Part shown: piece after piece, positions 1,373-56,459 of the stretch
How the letters are laid out: each line of letters starts with the position of its first letter
How positions within the stretch are numbered: the stretch's first letter is position 1
Source: Thalia democratica
Taxonomy: Eukaryota
Assembly (NCBI GenBank): GCA_965202585.1
Contig: OZ241827.1
Span: forward strand, 51,336,001 to 51,400,000
DNA length: 64,000 nt
Direction of reading: 5' to 3'
The notes under the pieces: generated by a model
Seen by the model: only the letters and a program-made list of their open reading frames with translations
Told to the model about the DNA's origin: nothing
Database searches by the model: none
Made by a program: the position numbers and the translations under genes

Positions 1373-2027
1373 AAGTGGAAGCAATCATTTTTCTAACTCT
1401 CTGAAAAAGAAATGTTTATGAAAGTTATTTTGGGAGACACTGCTAAAGACCATACTTGATGAAACAAGTTGCTTAATTCACACATTAATTACTAGAGCCT
1501 CGTTTACTAAAATAAAAAAAAACTGTATAGTATTTAATGTTCAGATAGATTAGCAACAATAGCATTCTTCCAGCACTACTAAGATCAAAGCTGCTGAATG
1601 TTAATTTCAGTTTATGCAAAATCATTTCATTCATACCTAGTAAGTTAGTTTTTTATGGAAAAGACTGTTGTTTTTGTTCTTGAAAATTTTCCAATATATT
1701 TTGGTAGTTACTTTTCGAAGTAATTTATTTTTGCTTTTAATTTAAGTTAATAAATCAGTCAATATTAAATAACTCTAAATCTAATTTTTTGAACTTTAAA
1801 AATTATTTAGTCGAATTTTTAAAGCTTTACTGCTATTAGTTTTTAACTGTAAATTTTTTACACTTTTTAAAATACTTAGTTGTTAAAGTTAAAAACTATG
1901 AAACATAATATCTCCTTACTACTGCTACCGTAACTAATAAAAGGCTTTTAAAAAGTACTTTTATATGTAGGTTTTATTTGACTATTCAATAAAAAAATAA
2001 TATAATGCTTTGTAAGTGAATGTAAAT

Positions 2028-2033
2028 TTTATT
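2028..2033 (-). terminator. Putative polyadenylation signal of the giant gene
   Basis: AATAAA on the minus strand about 165 nt after the stop, at the end of a slightly GC-richer UTR-like stretch; AATAAA is common by chance in this AT-rich DNA. Confidence 0.4.
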
Positions 2034-2198
2034 AGATATAATGCAACTGCGACAAATGACAGTAAAATAAGTTGTATAAAATAAGATAACAGTGTCGTAA
2101 ATGATACTAATATCACAGTGACAAGCGACCGAGCAGTTTAAAGTTATAAATGAGCAGTGGAAGAAAAATCAAAATGTCGCAGTCGTGAGTCGTAGAAT

Positions 2199-2713
2199 TT
2201 AATAATCGCCGCAACTAGAGCAGGCGCAGGACTTTATGACCGGAACGCTGATGGTGGTCTTGCTTCCGTCACCGCAAACAGCCGTCACCTCCTTCTGAGC
2301 AACCTCGCTCGGCTGGCAACAGTGGCAGTTTGACTGTAGAAAATAAAAGCTGATTAGTGTATAAACTATCAATAGTATTATATAAAATAGTTTTAGTTCA
2401 GTTAGTTTAACGGGGATCTTACAACAAAAAGGCATTTGTAAAGAGTTCTTAATAAAGAAATGATAACAATTGGGCTGTTTTAAATAAAAACTTCAAGTGG
2501 TTTATTGAAATTTAAATGTTCTAATATTTAAGTAATTTTGCGTAATCTTTTAAAGTCTACAAACTTGTATGTATGGTGGATACTGCAGCATAGTTGTGCT
2601 GGACGCGCAGCTTCCGGAGCACACGGATACTTCCTCCTCGTTCTCCGAGACGCATCCGTCAGCAGTGAAGAGTCGCTGAGTCTTCACCACTGGCTCACAG
2701 CTTTCCTTCTTAA
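2199..2713 (-). CDS. C-terminal cystine knot (CTCK), 11 Cys
   Basis: Exons 2565-2713 and 2199-2333 give [46 protein letters not shown]|[44 protein letters not shown], with the CxGxC and CxCC motifs of vWF/mucin knots. Confidence 0.93.
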
Positions 2714-5700
2714 CTGTGATGTCATATATTACTAAGACGTTTGTGTTAAACTAAAAACAGAGTGATTAATTTTACTCACAGAAATAGAAGCTAATGAAAA
2801 GGTATCTACACAAAATTTTCAAATTAAAAAAAGTAATGTTTCTTCATAAAAAAATAAAAGTTTACAAAAAGCTAACCACAAGTTGGGCAGCATTGGTCGT
2901 CAGAGTATTTAAGCTCATGTGTTTCGAAATCGCAGGCAACATCGCAGTGTTGTCGGTGGTCGACGCACGTGACAGAAGCCATTTTGTCGCAAGAACACTC
3001 CATACAGGGCCCATCGGTCCATGACGATCCATGTTTGTGAGATACGTTGTTGTATACACAGTCAGGTTCTTTTTTTAAGTGTTTATGCATGAGTTTTATG
3101 TTTAAAAAATATTTCTAAACACTTGCCTTTGTTAAAAAAAAATACCAAGAAGTATTATTTGCCAAAGGAACTTTTAAAATCGTTTTACTCATTGTTTTTA
3201 TCCACACAATATAATATTAACATTTAGATATTTGTCCAAAAAAATAAAAATAGAGAACAAAACAGTCAAACAAGTTGTAATTTTGATTAGTATATTAGTT
3301 TGAAGATTGAAAATAAAACACTAAAAAGTTGTTGTTTTTCACTTAATTAAGATATTTTACCTAAAATTGGTTTCAAACGACAGTTTCTTTCAAAGTTTTT
3401 TTAATTACTGTATATCACGAAACAAACCTTCCAGAACACAGGAGCAACAATCGTCAGAATCGGTACTCAACACGTGACCTTCAGGGCAAGCCGATATCGG
3501 ACAGAATTTACTGCAAGTTGAACTTCCATCTACGCACTTGCACATATGGCAACCGTCAACCCATTGGTTCTCCGGCTAAAATTTGGATTATGTCTTTTCA
3601 TGATTTTTAAAATTTAATAAAAAAAGATTGATTCTATTTAACAAAAAAATACAACAGTAAGAACTTATGTTTGTTAACAGATATTTTGAAGTTTTTATTA
3701 AAAATGTAAAATAGTCAAGTTGTCTTGTTTACTAGTTACAGTCATATTAGTTTGTAAACCAAGTTTGTTTCTTATATAAAAAATTAAACAAGAAAACATA
3801 CAGCTGGCTTGTTGTAGTCTACTCTATTAAAGTAGCAGTCGGTAGAAGTGGGTGGTGTGGTCCAGCTGGACGTCGGCTTCTTGGTGGTCGGCACTTGCAT
3901 GGTCGTCGTTGTCACGTTTATGAGTTGAGGCGCGCAGTAGCAGCACTTACCTGGTTGTTTTATTGCGTTTAACTATTTCGTTAGTCATAACTCTTTTTAT
4001 TAGTCAAACATTAAATTTAAATAGTAAAACTAGGAAGCTTTATAAAATTTCGAATACTTTCAGAGTTTTATTTTGTTACGAACCAAAAAAAAAGCTTGTA
4101 CATCCTTCGAGACCTAAACTGTTAAAAAATTGAAATACCTTCTTGGTTGACGAGGACTTGATCTTGTACCGAGCAGTCGCTTTCAGTTAACCTGCAGGAA
4201 TCGTACGTGCAAACTTCCTTGCTATCGACGCATTCGCAAAGCGCGCAGTCGCTCTTCCAGTACATGTCTCCCTCCTGCGAAAAAAAAAAGTATAGTTCCT
4301 GCGAAAATACAACTTAACCATAGTAAGTTTTTGTAGCTTGATTTATTTTGTTTCGTTAGCTGTCTTTCTTTTTTCAAAATCCGTGTCAATGCATGTAAAA
4401 TACTTTCAAAATATGAAAATAAGCGTGCGTCTAATGACAGAGGTGGCTTTAAATATTTTAAAACAGTTGTTTCTAATGTTTTGTAAACTTAATTAGATTA
4501 CTGCTGTCTTTGAACAATTGTCATTTACCATGTAAGTTTTATAGAGTAATAACCATTAAGTTTCTGCGAAAACGCAACAATAAAAACCAACGTTGTACGT
4601 TCTGCCCTCGTAAGTGCACTCCTTCTCGCAAGGTTCGTATTTGACGCACTTTCTCGTAACAGGGTCTTTTTCCTCTCCGTCCTCGCAAACGCACGTGTCG
4701 CACGTGTTGACCCTCGTCGATCCGCATCTTGTTGGCAGATGATCTGTGAATATCGAAACTTGTTAAAGCGATTAGGACCACCTACTAAAGCTACAAAATT
4801 AAGGTATGGTTTTATTAAATACTTTAACGGACAAACATACTTTAACATTTTTTGTAAAGTAGGAACCTGTTAAACTATTTTAAAAATAAGAAGTCTTAAA
4901 TATCTAGACTTGTTGATAAATATTTTAAAACTGAACTCTGACGAAAACAATTTTATTGAAATGTAATAAACTAACCAAAGTGCACTTGTTCGTCGCAAGT
5001 GATGGTGAACCTGCATTCTTCGGAACAAACTTCGGTGGCTGTAGTTGTTGACACTATACTCGATGTTGTTGTGATCTGAAAATTGTGGATAGACGCATTA
5101 TTTTTATCAAGAAAAAGCATTAGAAGAATGAATTACGATAAAAACTGTTTTGTTTGTTGTTACAACCTCACATCATTTTAATAAAAAAACTATAAGTTAT
5201 ATGTTTTTGTAAAATATGTTTAAGAAAGTGGAATCGCTATAGTACAAAACTACAGATTTACATTTTTTTAACTATGTTTAGTTATATTTAATAGTCTAAG
5301 TCATTATCAAATTAAACCAAGTGATCAAGTTTGTTCAAAAGTTATGAAATATCTAGAATTAAAAATGCATACATTTGCTCTTGGTGTTGAAGTAGTTGTA
5401 TCACAAGGAACAGACTTCTTCGTAATTCTACTGTCAGCATTGCAATAAACAACGTAACATTTTCCAAAGAAAGTAACTCTGTTAATTTCTTCACCTGTGA
5501 AAAAGCAGTAAAAATAGTAAGCAGATATTAAAATAAGTTAGTTAATTACAATTATAAAATAACAAACCTGGCATGTATTGGAAGTTGTTGTATTGACAGT
5601 ATTTAGTTGGCTCAGTTGTTTCTACAAATGGAGTAGAAGTTGATGATGCTGTAGTTGGGCAGTTAACCGTCTTGTTTGCAATATTGCTATCAAGATCGCA

Positions 5701-8700
5701 GTATACAAGTACACATCCAGAATTAACAACAACAATTCCAATGACATCACCTGTGATATAAAAAAATATTGCTTGTTTTTACTATAAAAATTTGCTTATG
5801 GTCATTTTGATAAAATTACCTGGTGCATAAACAAAGTTTTTCCATTCACAAACGCTTGGTGTTACTTGCCTAGGTGTAACTGTAACAACTTCTTCTGTAG
5901 TTCTTGTTTCTTCAGTTGTTGTTACCTTTTGATATTATTAAAATTATTAATAAAGTTTGCTTAAAATGTCTAACAACTATTTTGTTATTAGATTAGAATT
6001 TAAATATATAATTTAAGAAAATGTATGCTAAATAAAAGCTTGAGTAACATACTTGTTTTAATTAATGAACTTATAAACTCTTAACAAACGTTGTAAAAAG
6101 AGCCCATCTTAGCTGAAGTAAAAGTTAAAAAAGTTATTAGGATTAAATTTATTATAGGAAATACTAAATATGTACCTCAGGTGTAGGTGTAGTTGTGCAT
6201 TCAACAGTTTTGTTAACTACTTCGCTGTTTTCATCACAATAGACCATGAAACAAGTTCCGTCTGAGTTGACACTTCCAATAATTTGTCCTGAAAAGAAAA
6301 AGTTTTCAATAAAAAAATGTCTAATTAGCTTATAGTAGTTCTCTAAGATCAAACAAGTTACCTGGAGTAAACTGTAAGTGATTCCATTCGCAATGTTTTT
6401 CAACAATTTCAGTTGTTGTAACAACGAATGGTGTTGTTGTATCGTCGTTATCAGTAGAAGTTGTAGTGAAAATATCGCTAACTGTGCTTGTATCCTAAGA
6501 TTTAGAAAACGTTTGAGTAAAACTTAGTTTATGGCAAATTATTAGATTAATACGATTGTCGTATACGAATGATAAGCACTATTTCAACTTACCGGTCTTG
6601 TTGTTGATGGACAATTAACAGACTTCTTTTTGATCTCGCTATCCTTGTCGCAGTAAACAAGGAAGCAGTCTTCTCTGACGAGAATAATACCGATCATCTG
6701 ACCTGCTTCATAGACAAACTGGTTGTAGACACATTGCTTTGGTTTAGTTGTTACAATTGCTGTTGTGGAAGTTTCAATTGATGTAGTAGTTTCAACATCT
6801 ACTGGTGTTGTTGTTGTACTTACTGGTGACTCACATTGGATTTCTTTTTTGGAAATTTTGCTGTTAGAATCACAATAAACAAGGTAACATGTTCCCTGGA
6901 ATACAACTCTTCCTACTTCTTGACCTAAGATTTTGAACTTGTTAGTAATGCAAGAAACTTATCAAGAATATTGAGACGTAATCAAATAAACCTGGCATGT
7001 ATTGGAAGTTGTTGTATTGACAGTATTTAGTTGGCTCAGTTGTTTCTACAAATGGAGTAGAAGTTGATGATGCTGTAGTTGGGCAGTTAACCGTCTTGTT
7101 TGCAATATTGCTATCAAGATCGCAGTATACAAGTACACATCCAGAATCAACAACAACAATTCCAATGACATCACCTGTAATTCGAAAAAATAGATTGTTT
7201 GTCAGTTTTATATTTTGCTGATGATTCTTGTTTCTTAAATTAAATTTACCTGGTGCATAAACAAAGTTCTTCCATTCACAAACGCTTGGTGTTACTTGCC
7301 TAGGTGTAACTGTAACCACTTCTTCTGTAGTTCTTGTTTCTTCAGTTGTTGTTACCTTTTGACATTATTGAAATTATTAATAAAGTTTGCTTAAAATGTC
7401 TAACAACTATTTTTTTATTAGATTAGAAATTAAATGTATAATTTAAGAAAATGTATGCTAAATAAAAGCTTGAGTAACATACTTGTTTTAATTAATGAAC
7501 TTATAAACTCTTAACAAACGTTGTAAAAAGAGCCCATCTTAGCTGAAGTAAAAGTTAAAAAAGTTATTAGGATTAAATTTATTATAGGAAATACTAAATA
7601 TGTACCTCAGGTGTAGGTGTAGTTGTGCATTCAACAGTTTTGTTAACTACTTCGCTGTTTTCATCACAATAGACCATGAAACAAGTTCCGTCTGAGTTGA
7701 CACTTCCAATAATTTGTCCTGAAAAGAAAAAGTTTTCAATAAAAAATGTCTAATTAGCTTATTGTAATTCTCTAAGATCAAACAAGTTACCTGGAGTAAA
7801 TTGTAAGTGATTCCATTCGCAATGTTTTTCAACAATTTCAGTTGTTGTAACAACGAATGGTGTTGTTGTATCGTCGTTATCAGTAGAAGTTGTGGTGAAA
7901 ATATCGCTAACTGTGCTTGTATCCTAAGATTTAGAAAACGTTTGAGTAAAACTTAGTTTATGGCAAATTATTAGATTAATACGATTGTCGTATACGAATG
8001 ATAAGCACTATTTCAACTTACCGGTCTTGTAGTTGATGGACAATCAACAGACTTCTTTTTGATCTCGCTATCCTTGTCGCAGTAAACAAGGAAGCAGTCT
8101 TCTCTGACGAGAACAATACCGATCATCTGACCTGCTTCATAGACAAACTGGTTGTAGACACATTGCTTTGGCTTAGTTGTTACAATTGCTGTTGTGGAAG
8201 TTTCAATTGATGTAGTAGTTTCAACATCTACTGGTGTTGTTGTTGTACTTACTGGTGACTCACATTGGACTTCTTTTTTGGAAATTTTGCTGTTAGAATC
8301 ACAATAAACAAGGTAACATGTTCCCTGGAATACAACTCTTCCTACTTCTTGACCTAAGATTTTGAACTTGTTAGTAATGCAAGAAACTTATCAAGAATAT
8401 TGAGACGTAATCAAATAAACCTGGCATGTATTGGAAGTTGTTGTATTGACAGTATTTAGTTGGCTCAGTTGTTTCTACAAATGGAGTAGAAGTTGATGAT
8501 GCTGTAGTTGGGCAGTTAACCGTCTTGTTTGCAATATTGCTATCAAGATCGCAGTATACAAGTACACATCCATAATCAACAACAACAATTCCAATGACAT
8601 CACCTGTAATTCGAAAAAATAGATTGTTTGTCAGTTTTATATTTTGCTGATGATTCTTGTTTCTTAAATTAAATTTACCTGGTGCATAAACAAAGTTCTT

Positions 8701-11700
8701 CCATTCACAAACGCTTGGTGTTACTTGCCTAGGTGTAACTGTAACCACTTCTTCTGTAGTTCTTGTTTCTTCAGTTGTTGTTACCTTTTGACATTATTGA
8801 AATTATTAATAAAGTTTGCTTAAAATGTCTAACAACTATTTTTTTATTAGATTAGAAATTAAATGTATAATTTAAGAAAATGTATGCTAAATAAAAGCTT
8901 GAGTAACATACTTGTTTTAATTAATGAACTTATAAACTCTTAACAAACGTTGTAAAAAGAGCCCATCTTAGCTGAAGTAAAAGTTAAAAAAGTTATTAGG
9001 ATTAAATTTATTATAGGAAATACTAAATATGTACCTCAGGTGTAGGTGTAGTTGTGCATTCAACAGTTTTGTTAACTACTTCGCTGTTTTCATCACAATA
9101 GACCATGAAACAAGTTCCGTCTGAGTTGACACTTCCAATAATTTGTCCTGAAAAGAAAAAGTTTTCAATAAAAAAATGTCTAATTAGCTTATTGTAGTTC
9201 TCTAAGATCAAACAAGTTACCTGGAGTAAATTGTAAGTGATTCCATTCGCAATGTTTTTCAACAATTTCAGTTGTTGTAACAACGAATGGTGTTGTTGTA
9301 TCGTCGTTATCAGTAGAAGTTGTAGTGAAAATATCGCTAACTGTGCTTGTATCCTAAGATTTAGAAAACGTTTGAGTAAAACTTAGTTTATGGCAAATTA
9401 TTAGATTAATACGATTGTCGTATACGAATGATAAGCACTATTTCAACTTACCGGTCTTGTTGTTGATGGACAATCAACAGACTTCTTTTTGATCTCGCTA
9501 TCCTTGTCGCAGTAAACAAGGAAGCAGTCTTCTCTGACGAGAACAATACCGATCATCTGACCTGCTTCATAGACAAACTGGTTGTAGACACATTGCTTTG
9601 GTTTAGTTGTTACAATTGCTGTTGTGGAAGTTTCAATTGATGTAGTAGTTTCAACATCTACTGGTGTTGTTGTTGTACTTACTGGTGACTCACATTGGAC
9701 TTCTTTTTTGGAAATTTTGCTGTTAGAATCACAATAAACAAGGTAACATGTTCCCTGGAATACAACTCTTCCTACTTCTTGACCTAAGATTTTGAACTTG
9801 TTAGTAATGCAAGAAACTTATCAAGAATATTGAGACGTAATCAAATAAACCTGGCATGTATTGGAAGTTGTTGTATTGACAGTATTTAGTTGGCTCAGTT
9901 GTTTCTACAAATGGAGTAGAAGTTGATGATGCTGTAGTTGGGCAGTTAACCGTCTTGTTTGCAATATTGCTATCAAGATCGCAGTATACAAGTACACATC
10001 CAGAATCAACAACAACAATTCCAATGACATCACCTGTAATTCGAAAAAATAGATTGTTTGTCAGTTTTATATTTTGCTGATGATTCTTGTTTCTTAAATT
10101 AAATTTACCTGGTGCATAAACAAAGTTCTTCCATTCACAAACGCTTGGTGTTACTTGCCTAGGTGTAACTGTAACCACTTCTTCTGTAGTTCTTGTTTCT
10201 TCAGTTGTTGTTACCTTTTGACATTATTGAAATTATTAATAAAGTTTGCTTAAAATGTCTAACAACTATTTTTTTATTAGATTAGAAATTAAATGTATAA
10301 TTTAAGAAAATGTATGCTAAATAAAAGCTTGAGTAACATACTTGTTTTAATTAATGAACTTATAAACTCTTAACAAACGTTGTAAAAAGAGCCCATCTTA
10401 GCTGAAGTAAAAGTTAAAAAAGTTATTAGGATTAAATTTATTATAGGAAATACTAAATATGTACCTCAGGTGTAGGTGTAGTTGTGCATTCAACAGTTTT
10501 GTTAACTACTTCGCTGTTTTCATCACAATAGACCATGAAACAAGTTCCGTCTGAGTTGACACTTCCAATAATTTGTCCTGAAAAGAAAAAGTTTTCAATA
10601 AAAAATGTCTAATTAGCTTATTGTAATTCTCTAAGATCAAACAAGTTACCTGGAGTAAATTGTAAGTGATTCCATTCGCAATGTTTTTCAACAATTTCAG
10701 TTGTTGTAACAACGAATGGTGTTGTTGTATCGTCGTTATCAGTAGAAGTTGTAGTGAAAATATCGCTAACTGTGCTTGTATCCTAAGATTTAGAAAACGT
10801 TTGAGTAAAACTTAGTTTATGGCAAATTATTAGATTAATACGATTGTCGTATACGAATGATAAGCACTATTTCAACTTACCGGTCTTGTTGTTGATGGAC
10901 AATTAACAGACTTCTTTTTGATCTCGCTATCCTTGTCGCAGTAAACAAGGAAGCAGTCTTCTCTGACGAGAACAATACCGATCATCTGACCTGCTTCATA
11001 GACAAACTGGTTGTAGACACATTGCTTTGGTTTAGTTGTTACAATTGCTGTTGTGGAAGTTTCAATTGATGTAGTAGTTTCAACATCTACTGGTGTTGTT
11101 GTTGTACTTACTGGTGACTCACATTGGACTTCTTTTTTGGAAATTTTGCTGTTAGAATCACAATAAACAAGGTAACATGTTCCCTGGAATACAACTCTTC
11201 CTACTTCTTGACCTAAGATTTTGAACTTGTTAGTAATGCAAGAAACTTATCAAGAATATTGAGACATAACTAAATAAACCTGGCATGTATTGGAAGTTGT
11301 TGTATTGACAGTATTTAGTTGGCTCAGTTGTTTCTACAAATGGAGTAGAAGTTGATGATGCTGTAGTTGGGCAGTTAACCGTCTTGTTTGCAATATTGCT
11401 ATCAAGATCGCAGTATACAAGTACACATCCAGAATCAACAACAACAATTCCAATGACATCACCTGTAATTCAAAAAAATATTGCTTGTTTTTACTATAAA
11501 ATTTGCTTATAAGTCTTGTTTTTAATAAAATTACCTGGTGCATAAACAAAGTTCTTCCATTCACAAACGCTTGGTGTTACTTGTCTTGGTGTAACTGTAA
11601 CCACTTCTTCTGTAGTTCTTGTTTCTTCAGTTGTTGTTACCTTTTGACATTATTTAATTAATTAATAAAGTTTGCTTAAAATGTCTAACAACTATTTTGT

Positions 11701-44700: not shown

Positions 44701-47700
44701 TTTTATTAGTCAAAAGTAATTTGTGCTCTCAAAAGTATGTTAAAAACTTTGACTTGCATATTCGAGACGTGAACAATTGAATTTATTCAATGTTATCGCA
44801 CAGTTTTCAAAGCGTTAATAATTACTTAAATATATCAGATCGAAATATTTTTGATGTGCTGACCAGGTATTGTTGTTGAAGGAGGTGTGGATGTAACGTC
44901 TGTAGAACTTGTGGTAGTGTTTGTAATAATCTAAAGTTTGAAAACAAGTTTTACAATTTTGTTCAAAAAAATTTAACTACATTAGTCTTAGTTACTTTAG
45001 TAACATAAGTTACATTAGTTTCGATAAAATTTTACTGGATAAAATGTATGGGTATTTAAAAGTTTCAACGTTACTTAAACCTTGTATTATAACAAAAAAA
45101 ACCTTTGGCTGAGTTGTTGTTTTGGGTATAGTTGAGTTATTGCAGTTTTCATCTGAGCATACTGGGCTTCCATTAGTGCAAGAGCTAATTAAAATTAAAA
45201 AGTTACATTGCATGTTTGTCTTTTTTTTGCAGAGTAGTTAAAACTTTATTAGTAACACACAAAATATCAACAGTTTTAATAACAAATATCGAGTTTATTA
45301 CTATCAGTTTTTATGAGTCTTAAAGTAAATAATCCATTGCACCCGTGAAAGCAAGAGAATAAATTGAAAATTAAATGTAACAAGTACTCACCAAACTTCA
45401 CAGCCGACTTCGACAGACTCTCCGTTTTCGACCACTTTGTCGCCGATCATGCAGGGGCACTCGGTCCTCTTGATGCACTCTCCCTTGTGAAGGACGCTAC
45501 CTTGCGGACAGAAGCATCCTTCGAAGCACTCCTCCTCGCACTCCTCATCTTCGGGCTTGGTGAAGCAGCCCGAGTTGCAGACTTTTCCGCACTCCTGGTA
45601 CTCCATCCCGTTTTCACACTCCAAAGCTGTGTTTCAAAATCGATAAGAGTTGGACATATATGAAAAGTTTAATAAAATTTTGTTGCAATAAAACTTCTAT
45701 ACTCCTACCACTAATTGTGTAATTTTATAAAGTTGTGGCAGAGTCGAGTTTTAAAACGAGAACTTATCTTTGTAAAGCCCTTTAATTATTAATTGTTTGG
45801 GTAAAATAAAATTCAAGACAAACAAAATAAAAGAACTCACACTTACAATTTATTAGTTTCTTATAAAACTTAATCAAAATTTATAAACAGACAGCTTTAA
45901 AACATTGGGCCATCTAAAAAAAAACAATTTGAAACTTACCGCAGTTGGCAGTGGACCTCCACCTGATGTGCACGTTCTGCGCGTTGCATTCCCTCACGTA
46001 AGCGGCCACCGCCGTGCAGTAGCACTCGCAATCGCCACCACGATCGCAACCGCACGAGTCCCACAGGCACGCCTGGTAGTACGGGGAAACGTCCACCGCA
46101 AGATGGCACTTGTCGAAGGGGGAGTCGTTGAGGACCTTGCACTGCTTGTGCGCCCACTCGGACCTCTTGGGGTTGGAGATGCACGGGTGCTGAGGAACGT
46201 CGTCGCTCCTGGGGCACGTGAAGTACACTTTCCAGGAGTGACCGAAGTCGTGAGGAGACGACAGAAGGTTTCCTGGAATTTTTTTTTGTTTACAAAAAGA
46301 GCTTTAAAAAATAGATCTTAAGTTTTTGGTTGTTGCAGCTGAATGCTAGATCGGTTTATTTACAAGTTTCAAAAGTAAATAGAATGATAATTGTTCACAG
46401 CATTATCTACCTTGCCTGCTTCTGAAATCATTAGTAGAGCTACCGTCGTAGTCGCCACACAAACCGCACACTTTTCCTCTGTAACTCGGCTGAAGTTTCA
46501 CGTAGACACGAGTACCTACATCCCACATGACAGTGAGACCGATCTGTTGAATTGAAAAAAAAAACATTTATTCTGCTTCAATCTGTTTCTTATGTTTAAT
46601 GTATCTTGTGTAAATATTCTGTATATTTTTTGTATTTTTTTTTAAACTACTTACCTGTGTTTTAATGATAATAAAAAGGCCGCTTTGAGTAAGAGAGAAT
46701 TTAGCCACAGGAGTGCCGGGTCTTGCAAGGGGGTTTTTCGAAACAATTGGTTCAACTCCGCGCACCATTTGAATAACTGTGTCGTGAAGTGCAACCTGTA
46801 GTAAATAAAAAATAGTTGAAACTTGCAAAAATTTCTATAACGTTGAAGTTATACGTTTTTTAGTAGACGATCATACAGACTCAACTAAATGATTTAAACA
46901 ATAGAGAAAACAAAAAAAACATTGTGAAAGTTATTATTTATTTCCCAATAACCGACCTTGACGGCTTTAGTGCAAGTGACGCCGCCCGTGCTGCAAGGAA
47001 CGTTCTCCACAGTGATCCTGAAGTTGCCCAGCCCGTCGTCGCAGTAATCCTCGCTCAACACGTACGTGCAGTCGCCGTGGAACTCGAACTTGCCTCCGTC
47101 GAACGTCTGGTAATGGGGGTCTCCGTAAGCCGAGCAAGTTGCCGGGCACACTCGCTTCGTGCACTGCCACCTCGATCCCTTGCACTGGCTGTTTGTGAAG
47201 TTGAGGTTGTTTTACAATGCATGTCCGTTTGAGTGAATTTGTTTTATTCTATTATGTAGCTATTGGCTACCACAAACTTGTTTGATATAGAATAATATCT
47301 CAGTTGATAGCTATCTTAAAATTCAAAATATTTTTTTTCCAACACATGTAGGAATTGTTCACATGTAAATTGAAAAAAAAAACAACAACCATCTCCTATA
47401 AATATAGAAACACAAAAAACAGAATTGATGCACAAACTTAAACATACTAAAAGAAAAAGTCCATGATATCATCAAACTAACCAGTAGTTGCAGTCTTTCT
47501 TGATCCACATTCCGTTCGAGTAGCTCTCGTTGTTGAAAAAGCAGGAGCACCTTTCGGCGGTGACGCACTTGTCCCCGTCCAAATACTGGCCAATGGGGCA
47601 GCCGCAACCCTCGCTGCACGTGGACCTCTCGCACTTCACGTCTCTGTTGTCGCACGTTGCCTGGCATTCCGTGCAGTTCGTCCACACCATGCCTCCCGTC

Positions 47701-50700
47701 TGTTGGTTTTAACGGGGTGAAATGATTTGTTTGTTTTTATTTTGAAATAAACTTTAGATGGGATTTAATAAAGCTGTATTAAAAAATGTATTGCTTTTTC
47801 TGTCAATGAAGTGAATAATTGAGTCTGGTTTAAGATTAAAACATTTTAAAAGCGTGTCATTATTTTTTTATTTTTCAGATCTAAATAAAACTGTTTTCAA
47901 TTGATACTAAAAATACTTTTCATTATTAAAAACATTTACGATCAACTTAGAATAATTTTCACAAATCTCACCGTTCCACAGACGTTGTTCTCGTTGCAGC
48001 CTGGTTTCTCGGTGCACTTCCAGACACCACCCTCGCATTCGCAACTCGAACACATCGCCTGTCTCGTAGCTCCGTTCGGGTATGCTCGATCACTGAATAA
48101 TATATTAGCAACAATTTAAAATTTGTTTGTTTCCAATTTAAGAAAAATATGCTAATATGCTGGGTCCCTAAATAACACTTTCAAGTATTTATCTTAATGT
48201 GTTAGTTTTAGAAACAGATAAGTTTTAGTATTTAAACTTATTTTATGAGTTTAAAGTTTTCACTTGAGACTAAAGATATCAAACTTGAGTTTATCAAATG
48301 AAATGCAAAACAAAAACTACTGCTTTACACTATAAAACATAATACAATATACGTAGTCAACAAACTTGTAGTAGCAAGAACATTCAGAAACATCAACGCA
48401 TTTTTCCGCGTTATCATCATAAGCCGTACCGTCCGGGCAAACACAACCTTCGTAACACGTAGAGCTCTGTAAAAATAAAAGTTTAAGCTATTAGTTTACA
48501 AACTTCAAAAATAATTAAAAATTAGTTAAGAAGAAAGAATCCTTAACTATTAAATTTTTTAAATGAAGCAAAATGTAAGTTATACGCCTAAGTTACATTA
48601 ATGTGAGTTGATTACTGTAAAAACTAAAAGAAAGTGTTAACAACTAATGACTTACATTTTGAATACTAATTGTTATGTAATTACTAAAACACCGGTTACT
48701 AAAAAACATATATTTTCAAAATGTAATACAAACTGTCTACAAATGTTTTATTATAAAAAAGGACCATTTACTATTTTAATTCTTTTTAAAATTTAAAACA
48801 AACTTTTCTGCATTCTTCACCAGCTGACGCTCCCGAAGACTCGCTGATCTTCCTGCAAGTTGCCTCGCAGTCCATTTGGGCGCACGAGCTCCACTCCCTG
48901 CCCTCACTGCAAGTTGCCTGGCAACCGGTGGCGTTGCGCCAATCGGAAGCGAGGGGGCGATGCGCGTCACTGCACATCTGCGAGTAGCTGCTGATGACGG
49001 AGCACTTGCAGGTCGAGGGGTTTTCCGAGGTTTTGTGCATGCAGTGGCAGACGTCGTGCTCGCACATCTCGACGTACTTGTGAGGAGAAACGTGGGCGTG
49101 ACACGATGAGAACAGTTCTGATTTAAAATGTGAAAACTATGATGCAGTTATTTTAATAGAAAAAAAGCTAGAGCCGGTTTCGTTCAGCGATGTCAAGTTT
49201 TAAGTAGTTTGTAGAGTTGTGCTTTTATTGAAAGCATTGTTTTATTGGTAGCACACGATAATAGTTTTGAAAAACTGTTTGCTTCAACTTATATAATTAA
49301 AGGTTTTTTATGTGTAGTTTTCTCTGATGAAAACAATTCTTTTGCATGGTAAGGTAACGTTTTTGTTACTAGATTATAAAGAAGACATCTGAAGTATTAG
49401 CTTATTTTGATTTTAAGTCTTTATATAGAAATTCCCTAAAGTTTGATATAAAGTTCTAATAATTCATGTTTTGTTCTTTATAATTGACTATGTCGGTTTT
49501 TTGAAAAACGTTGTACATGATCAATCCAACTTTCTATGTAACTTTAAGAGATTATTACACACTAACAATACTGATTTGATACTCACCGCTCTTGAGAACG
49601 CTGCAGACTTCAGTGGCGTGCTTTTGGTAGCCAGTCGCGAGAACGCAGGCGTCGACGGCCATACCGGTGGAAACGTTCTCCTCACAATTGATCCCCGTCT
49701 TCCAAGATCTTCCGAACGTCGACACGCAGGTGGTGGTGACACCGGAGGGCAGCGTTAAGTCGTCGTGCTGGTTCAAGTTGTACACTCCGCACAGACCGGA
49801 CACCTTTGAAAGAACCATAAATAAAAAATGGTGATACTGCATCTTAGTATGGGAGCTATATTCTTTTAAAAATATTTTTATAACTGTGTAAATTTGATAT
49901 TTTAAGAGTTTTTTTTTTTAACTTATTAAAAACTTTATGACAACAATAGTTTTTCATTCTCAGCTTACCCTGGACTTGAGCGTTGGATCGATTTGAATGT
50001 AAATTCTGAAACTTCCGTCCCATCGCAATGAAATCGAACCGTCGGCCGTGGTCATCTGCATCATCAGAGAGGAAATTTTCTTGAAAGTAACGTCATCTGT
50101 AGTGTACGGCATTCTGACGTCATTACTTCCATCTTGGATTCGATTGAGCGAAAGCATTCTAATCAAAACGTATAAAATTAAACTCATGTTTCAAAAAACT
50201 TTAGTTAAAAAAAATCTAAGGTAAATATTAATTAAAAGTGTACCTGTATGTTTTTGTTCCGTAATTAAAAATGAGAGATTTTCTGCAAGGCTCAGTATCG
50301 TAGAATCCGCATCCTGAGTTTCGGACCCAAATCGCAAACGGGTTTGCTAATCGTGAGTCTGATTGCACTAGTACGTATTCGCATCCACCGGAGAACTAAA
50401 GTTGTTTAGATTTATTCAAAAACATACATAAATAAGTAGGGTAGGATAAAAGAAATACTTATTTTTAAAGCGTTAGTTATACTGACTTTTCCTGGTCTCT
50501 CTTTAACTATATATAAGCTTAAATTTTATTAGTCCATTAATCTATTTACTATAATTTACAGATACAAAGATAAACTTAAAACTAAGTTATACAGGCCAAG
50601 TAAAATGAGCGATTATAAAAGTCACAAATTAAAAAGTATACTTTACCTATTCTATTTTCCAACTTTATTTTTTATAAGTTCAAAAATACAATTAAAACTA

Positions 50701-53700
50701 GCCAAGGTTATCCACATACTAAACATTTTTGTACAATAGCACTTAAATTAGTTCACTACCAACCTGGTAGCTTCTACCGTCGAAGGTGATGTAATGATCC
50801 TCGCCGATGACCTGGCACGTCGGAGGACACTCCTTTTGAGTGCACTCCCACTTTCCTCCCGCGCAAGTGCAGTTGTTGCAGTTCTCCCTTATGACGTCAC
50901 CGTTGTGATACACGTCATCGCCGCTGGTGCAAGGGCAGTCGCGCTCGCTGACGCAGGAGTTCGTGACGGTGTCGAGCACCGTACCTTAAAAAACAATATA
51001 ATTATTTTCAAAAACTTAAAAGAAAGAAGTTGAGTCTTTAAGATTAGCTTTTTAGAAAGATTTGATTTTTTCAGTATTTAGTTATATGAAATTAACACTT
51101 AACATGTATGGCATAAGTCAAAAATTGTTTGTTACGCAAAAATTTTAATTCATGTTTCAAATCAAAATATTTGTTAATTCACAAACCAGGAGGGCAATGG
51201 CAGCCGTCGATGCAGATGTCGGTTGTGCACTCGGTGACTATTTCCTTGTTCTCACACGTTTTCGGGCATGCTGAGCTGCACTCGCTGTGAACCATTCCTC
51301 TCGCACACTGTATTCCTGTTTGGAGAAAATGGTTATCGCCTTGAAAAAAACTCTAATTTCAAAGTCAAATAAAGTCTAATACACCAAATCATTTGCATTA
51401 ATAACTGCAGCTAATATGAAAAAAATATATGTTAATTGAGCCAGCTTTAAGTATATATGGATCTATCGTCTACTTAATTCTAACAATTATCGGCTGAAAA
51501 ACACCGAACCATACAAACCAAACTGACCGCACAAACTTTCACTCCTCCAATCCAACACGACGTTTTTGAATGCGCACTGCCTGGAGTAGTGGGTGAAGGC
51601 CTCGCAGGCGCACTCCTCAAAATTGTCCACTCCGCACATGCACACGTCCGATACGCACCTTTGGTAGTAGATCTGTGATGGTTGTCGAATTTTTGAACCC
51701 GTTGTAAATTCTTTTGTTTTAAAGATAAAGGCTTAAAAAATAAAACTGTTAAAAAGGTAAAACATTCGTTGTTTGCAGACACAAGCTTTAAAATATTTTA
51801 CTGGTAAATAATATACCTTGCAACAATTTAAACGCCTAAACTTAACCATTTGATGTTTTAATCAACACGTTCTACTCACTGTTGGATTGATCGCGTCGTG
51901 ACAAGCAGCAAACTTGGAGCCGAGAAGCAGCTTGCAGTGTTCCTCTACAGGGCGAAGTTGTTCCTGCGAAAAGGCGGAGCAAGGGTGGGAAGTTCTCTTC
52001 GGAACGTTGGAACACTGGGAGGAGCTGTCGATGTTCATGTGGTAGAAGTTTCCAAACTCGTTTGCCTCAGTGAATGACTGTTATTGATATGTGTTTTAAA
52101 ACTTAAGACTTTTTTTTTAAATTTCTAATTTGTTAAAACATACAAAATAAAAAAATTATTTAAAAACAAACACTTTATTGTTTATTTGAAAGCAAATGAA
52201 AACTTACTTTTCCTTCAACTACGAAATCATTGTCTTCAATGCCGTCAAAGTTACCACATAAACCAAAAACATCATTTTTGAAAATATCGGGAACAACTAC
52301 GTCTACTGATTGGTCATTGTCGAATATTACTCGAAGTCCTGAAAATATTTTTTTTTAAATAAAAAGCTATCGATATTCTAAGAAAGTTATTCTAAGAAGC
52401 TTAAACTTGTAACCTTATTTCAATATAAATTTTAAAAATAACAGATGATAAGTGATAGAGTCTGAGAAATTAACAAACAGTTTTTTTATTTATTGTTCTA
52501 TATTTAGAATTAGTATCTTGAAATATATACGAACTATACTTATAGTAACAACTCACCTGATGCTAATCTGACGGTAGTGTATTCTCCGATCCTCTCGAGA
52601 ATGATGGTGTTTTCCACGGTCTTGGGCAGGTTGATGAATCTTCCGTTGTAAGTAGCAGTACTGTTCGGGTACAGCATGATGTTGTTCATGCCTCCCACTT
52701 CAATTCGCACTGATTTCTTGCACCTCTCGTTCGCAACGTTGCATCCAAATCTGTGGTTCACCTAGAAAAAAGTTTGTTTTTTAATTAAAAAGTTTATTTG
52801 ATGTTTGTTTTACTCAACAATCATAAAAAGTTAAAGCCTTTGCTAAGTCGCAGTACATTTTTACTTGGTAAAAAATGCTTTATTTAGTTCTTAAATCCTT
52901 TTAGTTTTTATATAAAAGCTTTTATTAGTAACTTCAGTTTACAGAAAAATACAAACTAAGTTTTTGTTATGTATTGTTGTATCAACAATATAACGATTTT
53001 TAAGGTTAAAGTATTGATTTTTTAAAACTTTTACACCAACCATAACGTGGAAAGTTCCTCCTTTCTGGGCCACCATCGAGTATGTGCACTCGCCTGGAAA
53101 GAAGTATTTGGCGCCATCGAGTGTCGTGTAGTGGTGAAGGCCGTACACCGAGCAGACGCTCGAGTGCCTCCGGGATCTCCCGTCGTCGAGAATGGTGCTC
53201 ATGATCGGGTTGCTGTCCTGTGATTGGTCCCTGAACTGACACATGTCCCCGGTGAACCCCCTCTTGCACATGCAGGTGTCGGGCACGATGCACTGGCCGC
53301 CGTTCATGCAACCGCGCTTGCAGATCGCTGCGGTAAATATGTTGTTTAGAAGTTGAAAGCACTAATACTTAGTGTTTTATTTATACAAAATTCAATAATT
53401 TTGTTGTATTCAAATGTGTAAGCAAATAAATGATTTAAACTTCATCGAAGAGCAAATGAAAGGGTTTAGTGCGAACACCGATTACTAATAAACGATGTTT
53501 CTTATTTCATTTTCAAAGCGGTTGGAAACCAAATCCAATTATTTTTTTATTAAAAAAAAATCATGCTCTACTAGTTACCGAATTCGCAGTGGCTTCCTTG
53601 GTAACCTTCAGCGCACTTGCACACGTCTTGACCGACACAAGTACCTCTGTTCAAGCAGCCACCGCAGGTAAATCGAGCTGTTAATATTACATACGTTTAT

Positions 53701-56459
53701 TTATTTTTTATTAAATACCAGTGTAGTTTTTTATACAAAATCAAACCAGTTTCGCATTGCCTTCCAGTCCAGCCGACGGGACATGAGCATTTGTTTGGTA
53801 AAACACAAACTCCTCCGTTTTTACACGGTTCACTGCACACGGCTGTCAAAATTTTCAAACTAATTAATTTTTTTTTTTTACGTTTACCTCTGAAACATTA
53901 TACTATATTATTCATTAACAATATTCGAATTTGTTAAAAAAAATGCTTTAACTATTACAAATTTTTATTAACAATCCACTATAAGTAGAAAAAAAAATTA
54001 ATACTTGAACCTAATAGAAATAATCACACTTAATAAACTTACGGGTCTCACACATGTTTCCTTGCCAGCCATCTCTACATTGACATTTGTCAGGAGCAAC
54101 ACATTTTCCCATATTTCTACACCCTTTCGAGCAGTGAGCTGGTAAAAATTTTTTTTAGCGTTGACAGTTGTTTCAGTTAAGTTTATCTAAATTAAGACAC
54201 AGCATTTGACAAAGCTATATGTTTAGTAGGTTTTTACAAACCAAAAAATATTTAAAATCTTGTTTAAAAACTCAATTCTACTAAATACAGATATTAAGGG
54301 TTTTTAAGTTTGCATAGATAAAAAAACACAAATGTTTTATAGTGTTTACTTAACTTTTTTATTTTGGTTACAGCAACCAATAAATATTAAATACAATTAT
54401 ACATTGAACACTGCTTTATATTTGAAATAAGTTTAAAAATATTAAACTAACGAATTTCACAAGATATTCCAATGTATCCAGATTGTCTGCAGTCACACAC
54501 ATTAGGACTGACACACATTCCTCCGTTCAAACACTTGTTACGGCACACCGCTGTATTATTTATATTTAAAATTATAGTTTTCCCGCAAGATTTTCGACGA
54601 CAAGTTTATGGTAAATTTTTAATTAAAACTTAGCTTTTAAATTGAATAATAGTTTTTAACTATTAACTATTGCTAATTTCATCGATTTAGGTAGATTGTT
54701 TAACCTAATATAGTTTGTTTTTACAAAACTTTTGTTTTTAACCGTTTTAACACATTTTAGTGAGGTTAATTGATTCAATCTTTCTAAACTGCTTTAAACT
54801 ATGCTGAAGAAATCCTTAGAAAAACATCTTAAAACTCTTAAAGTTGTTTTTATAAATTTAAACTTACTATTAGAAAAAATTACTCTTAATAAACTGGTAA
54901 TAAAGCAAGTAAACTACCGATTGAACAGTTGTTTCCAGTCCAACCTCTGCAACAAGCTTGTACTTTGTAAGGCACTTTTACCATCTTTTTAACAAGAACT
55001 GGCCTCCTTACGACACTGTTAATGAATTAATAACTTAGTTGAGCTGCTTATGTACGAATAATAAAAGGAAAAATTAGATAATTTCAATGATGAGTAGACA
55101 GTTTGTATAACTACGAGATTTGCTTCAGCTGCCTACGTCATATTGCGTGTGCAACTGAAGAAAATCTCTCAGTCGTACAACTAGATTTGTTTAAAAAAAG
55201 TGTTAAAACTTTTCTATGCATGTTTTAGTAGTAAATTATTCAAAAAATTTTTGTTTATTAAATGAAGAAAAATTAAAAAAACAATACAATAATTTGTTTG
55301 GTTCATCTAAATTATTTTTGAACAAAAGTGCGTGTGTTAAACCGTTTAAATTTTTAGACTTTAGTTTAATCTTAGTAATATAAAAACTACTTACAAACTT
55401 AACAAAACGTTTATCAAATTATTTTTTGTAAATGTTTTGTTATTTTTATTTGTTTATTTTTTTGCTTTCTTACAACTTCTAATTTCAATATGATTTTAAT
55501 GTGTATTGAAAAATACAATACATTCGGTACTACACAAACTTTCGTGAGAAAATATGTTTTCTTAAAATAAACTGTTTTGAAAGTATTTGTAAAACTTAAA
55601 AAAAAAAACACTTTTCTAATCTTCCATAAGTTTTTGTTTGTATTTTTTCAACAAAAAGTGGATTTAAATGTCCTGTCTTTGTTTGCTAACCGCAAAGCTG
55701 TTTTTTGTGGATTATAAAAAATAAATAAAAATCTGATAACTTGTATTAAAAATATGTTTGTTTTTATAATAATTAATAAAATGTTGTTTTAGCTCTTATG
55801 CAGTTTGATTAAAAGTTTCAATACTTTTTTACAAAAACTTCTATTAAAATCTATAGTTTTTACGATCGATTTACAGATTTAATTAATATTAGACTTAAAA
55901 ATGTTTTGTTTAAACAAGTTTAAGAAATTATTTAAATTTTATAAAAATTTAGTTTTACTTTAATCAAACTTATTCAAGTTAAAATTAAATAAAAGGAAAT
56001 ACTAAACCACAACAACTTTCTCAAAAGAAAAGAATAATGTTTAAACGTTTAATACCATCATTAAGCTCCTATGTATACATAAAGTACTAATTTTACTGTT
56101 TCTTAAATCCATCTTAAAGACATGTATTCAAACTTTTTTAATTATTAAAATAAAACAAGCTTAATTACCGGCTGAAGGTGCAGTACACTTGCTGGTCCTG
56201 CCGGATCCTGTTGATGATGGTATCGTCCCTGGTCGCCTGATCGCACCTCTGGTACTTCAACACGATCTGCGTCTTCTGCACCTCTTCAACTTCCTTTTCG
56301 ACCATCTTGACTTGAGTTATCGGGCACCAGCTGTATAATTACCATTGGCTTTTATAATATAAAGTTCAATCTAAGTTTGGTATAAACTTACTGCTCTGAA
56401 GCGCTGGCCTCGATAGCGAGGAAAATTGCGAAAATCGCAACAAAACGGAACGTGCCCAT
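2199..56459 (-). CDS. Giant multi-exon secreted vWF/gel-forming-mucin-like protein (SP-EMI-5xEGF-3x[VWD-C8-TIL-E]-TIL/VWC-[4-Cys module + Thr-rich spacer] arrays with VWC/LDLa/TIL linkers-VWC-CTCK); about 171 exons, about 9,200 aa by hand splicing
   Basis: ATG at 56459 is followed by a signal peptide, and the stop TAA is at 2199-2201 after the cystine knot. Hand-derived N-terminal exons: 56392-56459, 56169-56330, 54918-55015, 54452-54550, 54043-54138, 53747-53842, 53579-53677, 53041-53327, 52557-52761, 52208-52338, 51880-52077, 51528-51672, 51187-51315, 50764-50984, 50244-50395, 49969-50158, 49587-49803, 48804-49117, 48366-48466, 47972-48092, 47482-47699, 46957-47188, 46655-46795, 46411-46543, 45940-46272, 45392-45626, 45103-45184, 44864-44930, 44463-44656, 43903-44116, 43461-43640, 42985-43137, 42768-42881. 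All are GT-AG with consistent phases. Exons B-E of most array units were inferred from representative units, so the totals are approximate. Confidence 0.9.
2877..5075 (-). CDS. C-terminal variant TIL plus three VWC modules (no fourth VWD)
   Basis: Exons 4976-5075, 4592-4743, 4139-4274, 3802-3950, 3428-3575, 2877-3068. Motifs CTYEGRTYN|[15 protein letters not shown]; [13 protein letters not shown]; [24 protein letters not shown]...QCCPTC. Confidence 0.85.
5373..15076 (-). repeat. Array 3: four diverged lead-in modules (13368-15076), one D/E module, 5 homogeneous units of about 1430 bp (867 coding nt, 289 aa) and one terminal module
   Basis: Exon-A starts at 12636, 11212, 9783, 8353 and 6924, with a terminal module at 5494; spacings 1424-1430; exon A is 332 nt in all five units. 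Confidence 0.92.
15259..19003 (-). CDS. Linker 2: Thr-rich segments, variant TIL-like modules and VWC modules
   Basis: Exons 18953-19003, 18697-18878, 18082-18284, 17735-17878, 17273-17466, 16903-17052, 16441-16617, 16048-16199, 15744-15835, 15259-15494, all phase-compatible. Example motifs [13 protein letters not shown]...CQCPNA and [25 protein letters not shown]. Confidence 0.82.
19085..36101 (-). repeat. Array 2: 12 tandem units of about 1410 bp (5 exons, 888 coding nt, 296 aa, 4 four-Cys modules per typical unit) plus one terminal module
   Basis: Exon-A starts at 36101, 34710, 33297, 31885, 30477, 29065, 27655, 26248, 24836, 23424, 22014, 20606 and 19185. Exon A is 335 nt in 11 units and 311 nt in the first. 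Representative unit: A 20272-20606, B 20043-20175, C 19856-19971, D 19521-19641, E 19263-19445. Confidence 0.93.
36228..39477 (-). CDS. Linker 1: VWC-type modules and two LDL-receptor class A modules
   Basis: LDLa [33 protein letters not shown] (exon 38186-38358) and [19 protein letters not shown]|[16 protein letters not shown] (37175-37250 plus 36705-36886). VWC-like motifs [55 protein letters not shown]. Confidence 0.85.
39665..42690 (-). repeat. Array 1: about 2.25 diverged units (9 four-Cys modules), mostly unique introns
   Basis: Exons 42584-42690, 42293-42505, 42062-42194, 41877-41989, 41387-41507, 41132-41314, 40967-41064, 40671-40895, 40468-40600, 40287-40399, 40098-40221, 39846-40028, 39665-39771; same module sequences as arrays 2 and 3. 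Confidence 0.88.
42985..44930 (-). CDS. Short Thr-rich stretch and two TIL-VWC pairs
   Basis: [17 protein letters not shown]...CECPPNK; [15 protein letters not shown]...QCCPTC; second [20 protein letters not shown]...; VWC-like [13 protein letters not shown]...GCCYC. Confidence 0.8.
45103..47699 (-). CDS. D' (TIL'-E') plus VWD3-C8-TIL-E assembly
   Basis: TIL' [14 protein letters not shown]...[10 protein letters not shown]; VWD3 [32 protein letters not shown]...[19 protein letters not shown]; MWDVGTRV; [10 protein letters not shown]; C8 [34 protein letters not shown]. Confidence 0.92.
47980..50820 (-). CDS. VWD2-C8-TIL-E assembly
   Basis: [29 protein letters not shown]; LRWDG; VSGLCGVYN; C8 [22 protein letters not shown]...WRNATGC; then TIL and E modules. 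Confidence 0.9.
50820..53160 (-). CDS. VWD1-C8-TIL-E assembly
   Basis: [25 protein letters not shown]; [10 protein letters not shown]; C8 [31 protein letters not shown]...WRSESLC; [21 protein letters not shown]...[10 protein letters not shown]. Confidence 0.9.
53220..54550 (-). CDS. Five EGF-like repeats; the first four are phase-1 symmetric exons of 96-99 nt and the fifth begins the exon that runs into VWD1
   Basis: [19 protein letters not shown]...C; [28 protein letters not shown]; [28 protein letters not shown]; [27 protein letters not shown]; [28 protein letters not shown]. Confidence 0.9.
54918..56330 (-). CDS. EMI-like domain (2 exons)
   Basis: Spliced sequence [15 protein letters not shown]...YQRC...VYCTFSR|[30 protein letters not shown]; the N-terminal Cys and terminal CCxGWxGxxC are typical of EMI domains that precede EGF repeats. 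Confidence 0.65.
56392..56459 (-). CDS. First coding exon: signal peptide [22 protein letters not shown]
   Basis: ATG, a basic residue, a hydrophobic core and an A-S-A cleavage-type motif; ends at a CA|GTAAGT donor that is phase-compatible with the next exon. Confidence 0.85.

Follow-up and report, generated by a model that had tools for sequence, protein, structure and literature searches.

The multi-VWD superfamily includes mucins, SCO-spondins and hemocytins. Families of vWD glycoproteins have been expanded in ambulacrarians and amphioxus, an expansion that has been tied to mucociliary feeding (Simakov et al. 2015, PMC4729200), and the invertebrate mucin-like proteins are nearest to SCO-spondin (Lang et al. 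2016, PMC4948705). Here, we analyse 64,000 nucleotides of Thalia democratica (contig OZ241827.1, positions 51,336,001 to 51,400,000), called the window below. We consider it likely that positions 2199-56459 of the window are one real and expressed gene on the minus strand, whose product is a secreted glycoprotein of this superfamily with a mass of about 1 MDa. We refer to it as the giant protein.

The giant protein shares with MUC2, MUC5AC and MUC5B the D1-D2-D'-D3 assemblies, VWC modules, a cystine knot with 11 cysteines, a Thr-rich centre and a homologous module of 41 amino acids. It differs from these mucins in that CysD, D4 and a long proline-threonine-serine (PTS) exon are missing, while an EMI-like/EGF head and LDLa domains are added, and it is placed outside the clade of chordate mucins. 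In place of the long PTS/CysD centre there are 85 small FN1/VWC-like modules. MUC6 and MUC19 are likewise not known to have D4.

SCO-spondin (Acipenser ruthenus RXM28414.1) is the second system to compare with. It has an EMI-type head, D1-D3, LDLa, TIL, VWC and a cystine knot, and it gives the best local identity over D2-D3, 36-38%. However, SCO-spondin consists mostly of TSP1 repeats and has about ten LDLa domains, whereas the giant protein has no TSP1, two LDLa and, in addition, five EGF domains and the 85 modules.

Gene model and RNA contigs

The window is AT-rich, with about 32% G+C, and has no runs of N. A six-frame reading places the coding strand on the minus strand, where pieces of EGF, VWD, C8, TIL, VWC, LDLa and cystine-knot domains are found together with a long near-identical series. 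Segments on the plus strand that appeared Cys-rich turned out to be nonsense in the same reading.

The gene model was obtained by an exon-chain dynamic program using codon log-odds and splice-site matrices. Only GT-AG introns were allowed, and the training was iterative, on the window itself. The program converged on a single open path of 173 exons and 9,254 amino acids with the stop codon at 2199-2201. We dropped the two most 5' mini-exons (57570 and 56632) as artefacts of the score maximisation, because a TAA interrupts the genomic frame 11 codons ahead of the ATG at 56459, which opens a canonical signal peptide. The start codon has an A at -3 and a G at +4, and the first exon ends in a GTAAGT donor. 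Thus, the final model, on the minus strand, starts with the ATG at 56459, ends with the stop codon at 2199-2201 and has 171 GT-AG exons and 9,230 amino acids.

The median exon is 133 nt and the median intron 98 nt. The predicted protein has a mass of 1,015 kDa, a pI of 4.5, 688 cysteines (an even total) and 15% Thr. The initial annotation, which gave no strand, had described one continuous GT-AG path over the same coordinates, with about 171 exons, about 9,200 amino acids and roughly 1 MDa before glycosylation, and it had expected that an annotation based on open reading frames would fragment the gene. All of this is borne out by the model. No RNA genes were found in an Rfam search of the window.

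The order of the domains is signal peptide, EMI-like region, five EGF, D1-D2-D'-D3, a Thr-rich exon, TIL-VWC-TIL-VWC, array 1 (9 modules), island 1, array 2 (50 modules), island 2, array 3 (26 modules), VWC and cystine knot.

Sequences from this genomic stretch are also present in marine metagenomes and metatranscriptomes, and 19 of the predicted introns are reproduced by contigs from four marine metatranscriptomes. In the region 2000-5900 all eleven introns of exons 163-173 are seen, in up to four metatranscriptomes, and one RNA contig of 1,752 nt runs from the 3' untranslated region into array 3. Eight introns in the region 35700-40100 are reproduced by one run, X7. There, a contig of 745 nt joins exons 51-54 (VWC-LDLa-VWC), and other contigs join exons 48-50, 56-57 and 58-59. 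Three joints between an array and a unique part are found in RNA: those on either side of island 1, with array 1 and with array 2, and the one between array 3 and the C-terminus. Two joints that apparently were off by 1-3 nt are the model's own joints beside a single-nucleotide polymorphism. The RNA contigs demonstrate local splicing, not a full-length mRNA.

The database searches were queried with single exons or with sequences of relatives. Pfam, run on single exons, identifies over the whole protein three VWD, three C8, TIL, VWC/VWF, EGF, two Ldl_recept_a and Cys_knot. The features of the gene are the following, with the evidence in brackets.

2199-56459, minus strand: whole coding region, 171 GT-AG exons, 9,230 amino acids (exon-chain model, start-codon check, composition)
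56392-56459, minus strand: first coding exon, with the ATG and the signal peptide (upstream in-frame TAA, A at -3 and G at +4, GTAAGT donor)
54918-56330, minus strand: EMI-like region on two exons, 6 Cys, pattern WC...CCxGWxGxxC (motif alone; aligns with the corresponding region of the crinoid protein XP_033114357)
53236-54550, minus strand: five EGF-like domains, one per exon, exons 6-10 (exon table; Pfam EGF on exon 10; alignment to five crinoid EGF domains)
50818-53154, minus strand: D1 assembly with VWD1, C8-1, TIL1 and E1 (Pfam VWD, C8 and VWC/VWF; tblastn collinear with XP_033114357 and P0050)
47972-50817, minus strand: D2 assembly with VWD2, C8-2, TIL2 and E2 (Pfam VWD and C8; tblastn)
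45103-47699, minus strand: D' (TIL'-E') and D3 with VWD3 (GDPH start), C8-3, TIL3 and E3 (Pfam VWD 1.7e-14, C8 1.8e-20, TIL 1.5e-12)
42985-44930, minus strand: short Thr-rich exon, then TIL, VWC, TIL, VWC (Pfam TIL/VWC on exons 31-34)
39665-42881, minus strand: array 1, 9 modules of 41 amino acids with Thr/Pro linkers, exons 35-48 (profile built from the window's own modules; RNA joint from exon 48 to 49)
36705-39477, minus strand: island 1, VWC-type modules and two LDLa, exons 49-56 (Pfam Ldl_recept_a 1.1e-9 and 2.5e-3, VWC; RNA contigs)
19085-36598, minus strand: array 2, 50 modules, with a regular core of 11 tandem units of about 1.41 kb, each of 4 modules and 5 exons (units 93-100% identical)
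15259-19003, minus strand: island 2, TIL-like/VWC modules between Thr-rich stretches, exons 120-129 (exon table; Pfam VWC weak only)
5373-15076, minus strand: array 3, 26 modules, units of about 1.43 kb (unit comparison; RNA joints of exons 163-165)
2877-5075, minus strand: C-terminal Cys-rich block with a TIL-like piece and VWC modules, exons 166-171 (Pfam VWC; every intron in RNA contigs)
2199-2713, minus strand: cystine knot with 11 Cys (CSGSC, CHCC, CACSSC) and the stop at 2199-2201 (Pfam Cys_knot 3.8e-5; intron 2334-2564 in four RNA runs)
2027-2198, minus strand: 3' untranslated region (RNA contigs extend to 2027-2050)

The cystine knot carries the signatures CxGxC, CxCC and CxCxxC.

The module, its arrays and its ancestry

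Using a hidden Markov model (HMM) made from the window's own modules we found 85 strong copies, each of 41 amino acids with 4 Cys, spread over 113 exons. The earlier estimate of about 85 small disulfide modules on more than 100 exons is therefore exact in its first number. The Cys spacing is C-x22-C-x4-C-x12-C, and the module types follow a strict cycle of four. The profile CxYxGxx(F/Y)xxGxxI...GxCxxxxCxxNxx(I/V)xxxxxxC is here found beside Thr-rich sequence in a multi-VWD protein. The 82 linkers have a length of 17-40 amino acids and consist of 35% Thr, 11% Pro and 7% Ser, about 1,100 Ser/Thr altogether. The Thr-rich array constitutes two thirds of the giant protein.

On the genomic level a unit of 1.41-1.43 kb comprises five exons and four modules, and a phase-1 intron at the PG|G turn splits three of the four modules in each unit. 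The unit lengths were obtained by exon anchoring; Tandem Repeats Finder, with a longest period of 500, gave nothing. The units of array 2 are 93-100% identical with the introns counted, and a three-unit block of 4.23 kb at 30477-26249 is repeated at 24836-20607 with 13 differences. In array 3 the units (three within 6925-11212) differ by 4-6 nt per 1,430. Such near-identical units suggest very recent unequal crossing-over, and the copy number of the arrays is likely polymorphic. Between array 2 and array 3 the exons are 91% identical and the introns 66%, which argues for purifying selection on the coding parts.

Sequence searches of Pfam and PDB with an array exon returned nothing usable, and neither fn1 nor VWC reached threshold. 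AlphaFold2 (AF2), given a 30-row alignment of the modules, predicts a five-stranded β module with a pLDDT of 92. When this model is compared with PDB by Foldseek, the matches are FN1 modules, the VWC domains of collagen IIA and CCN3, and the D3 assemblies of VWF and MUC2. Against the Swiss-Prot models the top match is chicken MUC5B, residues 1208-1255 (TM 0.68), followed by Kielin/chordin VWC and the tPA finger. The Foldseek probability is 0.9-0.99 and the TM-score 0.55-0.69 to FN1 pairs, the tPA finger, collagen IIA/CCN3 VWC and Kielin/chordin, at a sequence identity of 14-22% to the fold relatives. ESM-Atlas features point weakly in the same FN1/VWC direction.

According to the predicted structure, the module is an FN1/VWC-N (E-like) β module, whose four Cys would form two disulfides. 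It has the small two-sheet β architecture and the two disulfides in common with FN1 and with the N-terminal subdomain of VWC (the E modules of VWF), but it falls below the Pfam thresholds for both fn1 and VWC and has a Cys spacing of its own.

The HMM built from the window alone also matches single modules in vertebrate mucins, for example CHYNGEDFLPGSLIYNVTDHDGHCYTGYCDENCKVVVTHYTC (P0008 residues 2993-3034, 18.7 bits). The vertebrate copies are located directly after D3 and directly before D4, and the copy after D3 is contained in the MUC5AC constructs PDB 8qsp and 9gvj. At least one copy is present in 83 of the 196 proteins retrieved, and two is the commonest count among those listed. With the reciprocal HMM, for which no modules other than 15 from vertebrates were used, 86 domains are recognised in the giant protein (best 27 bits) and none in a reversed-sequence control. 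We conclude that the 41-residue module is homologous to the module at the PTS borders of the vertebrate gel-forming mucins.

Tandem arrays of the same module type exist in mucin-2-like proteins of a shark, Chiloscyllium punctatum (XP_072448971.1, 28 copies from residue 2029 onward), and of a sawfish, Pristis pectinata (XP_051885680.1, 10 copies in residues 1890-2339). Both have a period of about 70 amino acids and short Thr-rich linkers. They differ from the giant protein by fewer copies, by a module with 6 Cys and a CxC start, and by the lack of the EMI-like/EGF head and of LDLa. In the tree the two are true mucin-2-type proteins inside the vertebrate clade, and the amplification of the module there is therefore independent. 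In the literature searched we found no description of this shark and sawfish architecture.

Close matches of an array exon are limited to ten unnamed environmental fragments, with 72-98% identity. As a possible relative of the arrays we considered, and rejected, Oikosin 1 of Oikopleura. Its Cys domain has been likened to vertebrate mucin and CILP sequences (PMC3390340), and we read it as being of the CysD type.

Head, islands and relatives

The head of the giant protein (EMI-like region, five EGF and D1-D3) aligns end to end with XP_033114357.1 of the crinoid Anneissia japonica, with 35% identity over 1,536 amino acids. The crinoid protein, annotated as 'SCO-spondin-like', likewise has a signal peptide, an EMI-like region with CCxGWxGxxC at its end, five EGF domains and D1-D2-D'-D3. 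The difference is that the annotated protein (1,580 amino acids) ends after D3. On the same strand, 273 bp downstream (VUNX01003736.1, 10001-55396), there is a gene of 3,084 amino acids with LDLa, TIL, FA58C, VWC and Kringle domains. The two crinoid genes, of 1,580 and 3,084 amino acids, are probably one gene split by annotation. No module arrays were found in the 10 kb read at the crinoid locus.

The EGF stretch of the crinoid protein matches EGF_TEN. For the EMI-like region, Pfam is silent on both exon pieces and also on the complete homologous region of the crinoid, leaving the motif as the sole support for the name. The AF2 model of this region, from an alignment of three rows, has a pLDDT of 43 and is unusable.

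GDPH is the autocatalytic Asp-Pro cleavage motif of the D4 assemblies of MUC2 and MUC5AC and of FCGBP. In the giant protein GDPH opens VWD3, in exon 24 (47100-47136, minus strand), and is missing from VWD1 (GLHHY) and VWD2 (GEDHY). Judged by this motif, VWD3 carries a putative autocatalytic cleavage site.

The gene has no fourth VWD (D4) in tblastn searches of the window: among the matches listed for two of the queries, one of them containing D4, those of VWD type fall only within 45,900-53,400, and six multi-VWD relatives give no match on the plus strand or beyond the gene. WxxW and CSxTCG motifs are both absent from the 9,230 amino acids, i.e. the protein is without a TSP1 motif and without CysD. 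The domain inventory proposed at the outset, with five EGF, three VWD assemblies, two LDLa and a cystine knot and with neither TSP1 nor D4, agrees with these searches, with Pfam and with the exon table.

A quick maximum-likelihood tree of D1-D3 with 29 rows places the giant protein as sister to the crinoid XP_033114357.1 (SH-aLRT 98). The pair shares its half of the tree with SCO-spondins, hemocytins and other mucin-like proteins of invertebrates. It does not belong to the clade formed by the mucins of vertebrates, Ciona and amphioxus, and it is also outside the clade of sea-star and sturgeon SCO-spondins. This agrees with the nearness of invertebrate mucin-like proteins to SCO-spondin found by Lang et al. 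(2016, PMC4948705). In a HMMER search of the C8-3 exon against 1.84 billion representatives there were 1,487 hits, none with more than 45% identity.

The same comparisons bear on whether the protein is the animal's counterpart of SCO-spondin, forming a thread like Reissner's fibre or a matrix cable instead of mucus. The highest identities per residue over D2-D3 are to SCO-spondin, 38% in the sturgeon, the C8-3 exon is 44% identical to shark and sea-star proteins, the LDLa domains and the EMI-like head are SCO-spondin traits, and the affinity reported by Lang et al. points the same way. However, TSP1 repeats, the bulk of SCO-spondin, are completely missing and LDLa domains number only two, both in island 1, after the first array. 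Further, the protein is placed beside the crinoid EMI-EGF protein and not among the sea-star and sturgeon SCO-spondins, and the very high RNA depth in plankton samples is better suited to bulk secretion. We therefore regard an SCO-spondin counterpart as improbable.

A clotting or adhesive protein of the body fluid, of the hemocytin/hemolectin type, seems still less probable to us. It is true that hemocytins from Limulus, a scorpion and Priapulus are among the best D1-D3 matches and are found in the same half of the tree. A tblastn search with Limulus hemocytin has no match on the plus strand or beyond the gene, the matches inside the gene not being individually inspected, and a Thr-rich array makes up two thirds of the protein. 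The islands are fully occupied by small Cys modules, apparently with no space left for a discoidin domain, and the model has no unassigned coding stretch of discoidin size, with Pfam run on part of the exons.

The initial annotation had also stated that the domain order matches no family that could be named, and this is not supported in that form: the head is shared with the crinoid XP_033114357, the module is the one at the PTS borders of vertebrate mucins, and arrays of it exist in shark and sawfish. Therefore both the parts and the design principle have precedents. What is new is the combination of parts and the scale. The related proposal of a lineage-specific, possibly undescribed, polymer-forming mucus or matrix protein stands in substance, given that both polymerisation ends are present and no relative exceeds 45% identity, although "no family" was too strong.

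Two other genes lie in the window, both trypsin-like, with a single exon and on the minus strand (61685-63601), in a GC-rich patch of about 46% G+C compared with 25-30% around it. The gene at 62801-63601 (minus strand, 266 amino acids) has a signal peptide and an intact His/Asp/Ser triad. In the other, at 61685-62578 (minus strand, 297 amino acids), His57 is replaced by Ser and Asp102 by Asn, and its product is likely a pseudoprotease. Close matches of both genes are limited to unnamed marine metagenome proteins; the named matches have at most 31% identity and come from many phyla.

One gene and its possible role

Several observations weigh against a single gene for a mucus polymer. Among the contigs and transcripts compared none spans the gene, and both the junction between the N-terminal part and array 1 and the whole of island 2 lack RNA support. 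The linkers are short, with a median of 34 amino acids, unlike a classical PTS domain. The exact copy number depends on the assembly, because some array units are 99.7-100% identical. EMI is an unconfirmed label, and polymerisation, glycosylation and a role in mucus are inferred from the domain content. Finally, the word depth of run X7 is in the thousands on the unique 3' exons versus 5-8 on island 1, a gap of about 500-fold.

This gap could be due to 3' bias or to shorter transcripts with the same 3' end. In the latter case there would be several transcription units, e.g. an abundant shorter mRNA that starts in or after island 2 and shares the 3' end, beside the 28-kb mRNA or replacing it. 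Runs X11, X12 and X14, which have coverage at the 3' end only, would fit as well. On the other hand, the frame is open across all 171 exons, neither a signal peptide nor a terminal exon occurs inside it, and RNA is spliced from array 1 to island 1, from island 1 to array 2 and from array 3 to the C-terminus. In addition, at least one of the libraries was primed with oligo-dT, by which the 5' part of an mRNA of 28 kb is covered too thinly, and the depth gap is consistent with such a bias. All in all, we find several units unlikely and prefer the single gene.

If the giant protein is made from this single gene, its assembly may proceed as in VWF and MUC2/MUC5. After removal of the signal peptide, two chains would be joined tail to tail through the 11-Cys cystine knot, and the D1-D2-D'-D3 head would link the dimers by disulfides into long polymers or nets. 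The 85 modules, predicted to be rigid, would form two thirds of each chain, and the Thr/Pro linkers between them are presumably densely O-glycosylated. The outcome would be an acidic, hydrated filament similar to beads on a string, about 1 µm per monomer as estimated from about 0.25 nm per glycosylated residue and about 3 nm per module. Sites for binding of Ca2+ or of partners could be offered by the EMI-like/EGF head and by the islands with their VWC, TIL-like and LDLa modules. The arrays have undergone recent tandem growth, most likely by unequal crossing-over of the 1.41-1.43-kb unit with its four modules and five exons, a unit that multiplied a module kept by ordinary mucins only at the two PTS borders.

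Tentatively, we propose that the giant protein is the main structural polymer of the feeding or protective mucus (net, web or sheet) of a pelagic animal. The 85 FN1-like beads, with short glycosylated tethers between them, would then be a second, independently evolved counterpart of the role of CysD in MUC2/MUC5, giving a filament that is extensible, can be cross-linked and possibly binds particles, and sharks and rays would have arrived at the same design from the same ancestral PTS-border module. We hold this as a possibility, well short of an expectation.

Much of the particle transport in the ocean is due to the mucous nets and gels of plankton animals, and the structural proteins of these are almost unknown. 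The giant gene is strongly represented in open-ocean metatranscriptomes, and its complete, splice-checked model provides a 1-MDa candidate for a polymer of plankton mucus. The near-identical units of 1.4 kb predict a copy-number polymorphism like that of the VNTRs (variable number tandem repeats) in human mucins. Through this finding a role is also assigned to a small module without a name that is found at the PTS borders of nearly all vertebrate gel-forming mucins. In two distant lineages multiplied copies of it form the main body of a protein, which brings its function, as a spacer, a cross-linker or a ligand binder, within reach of experiment.

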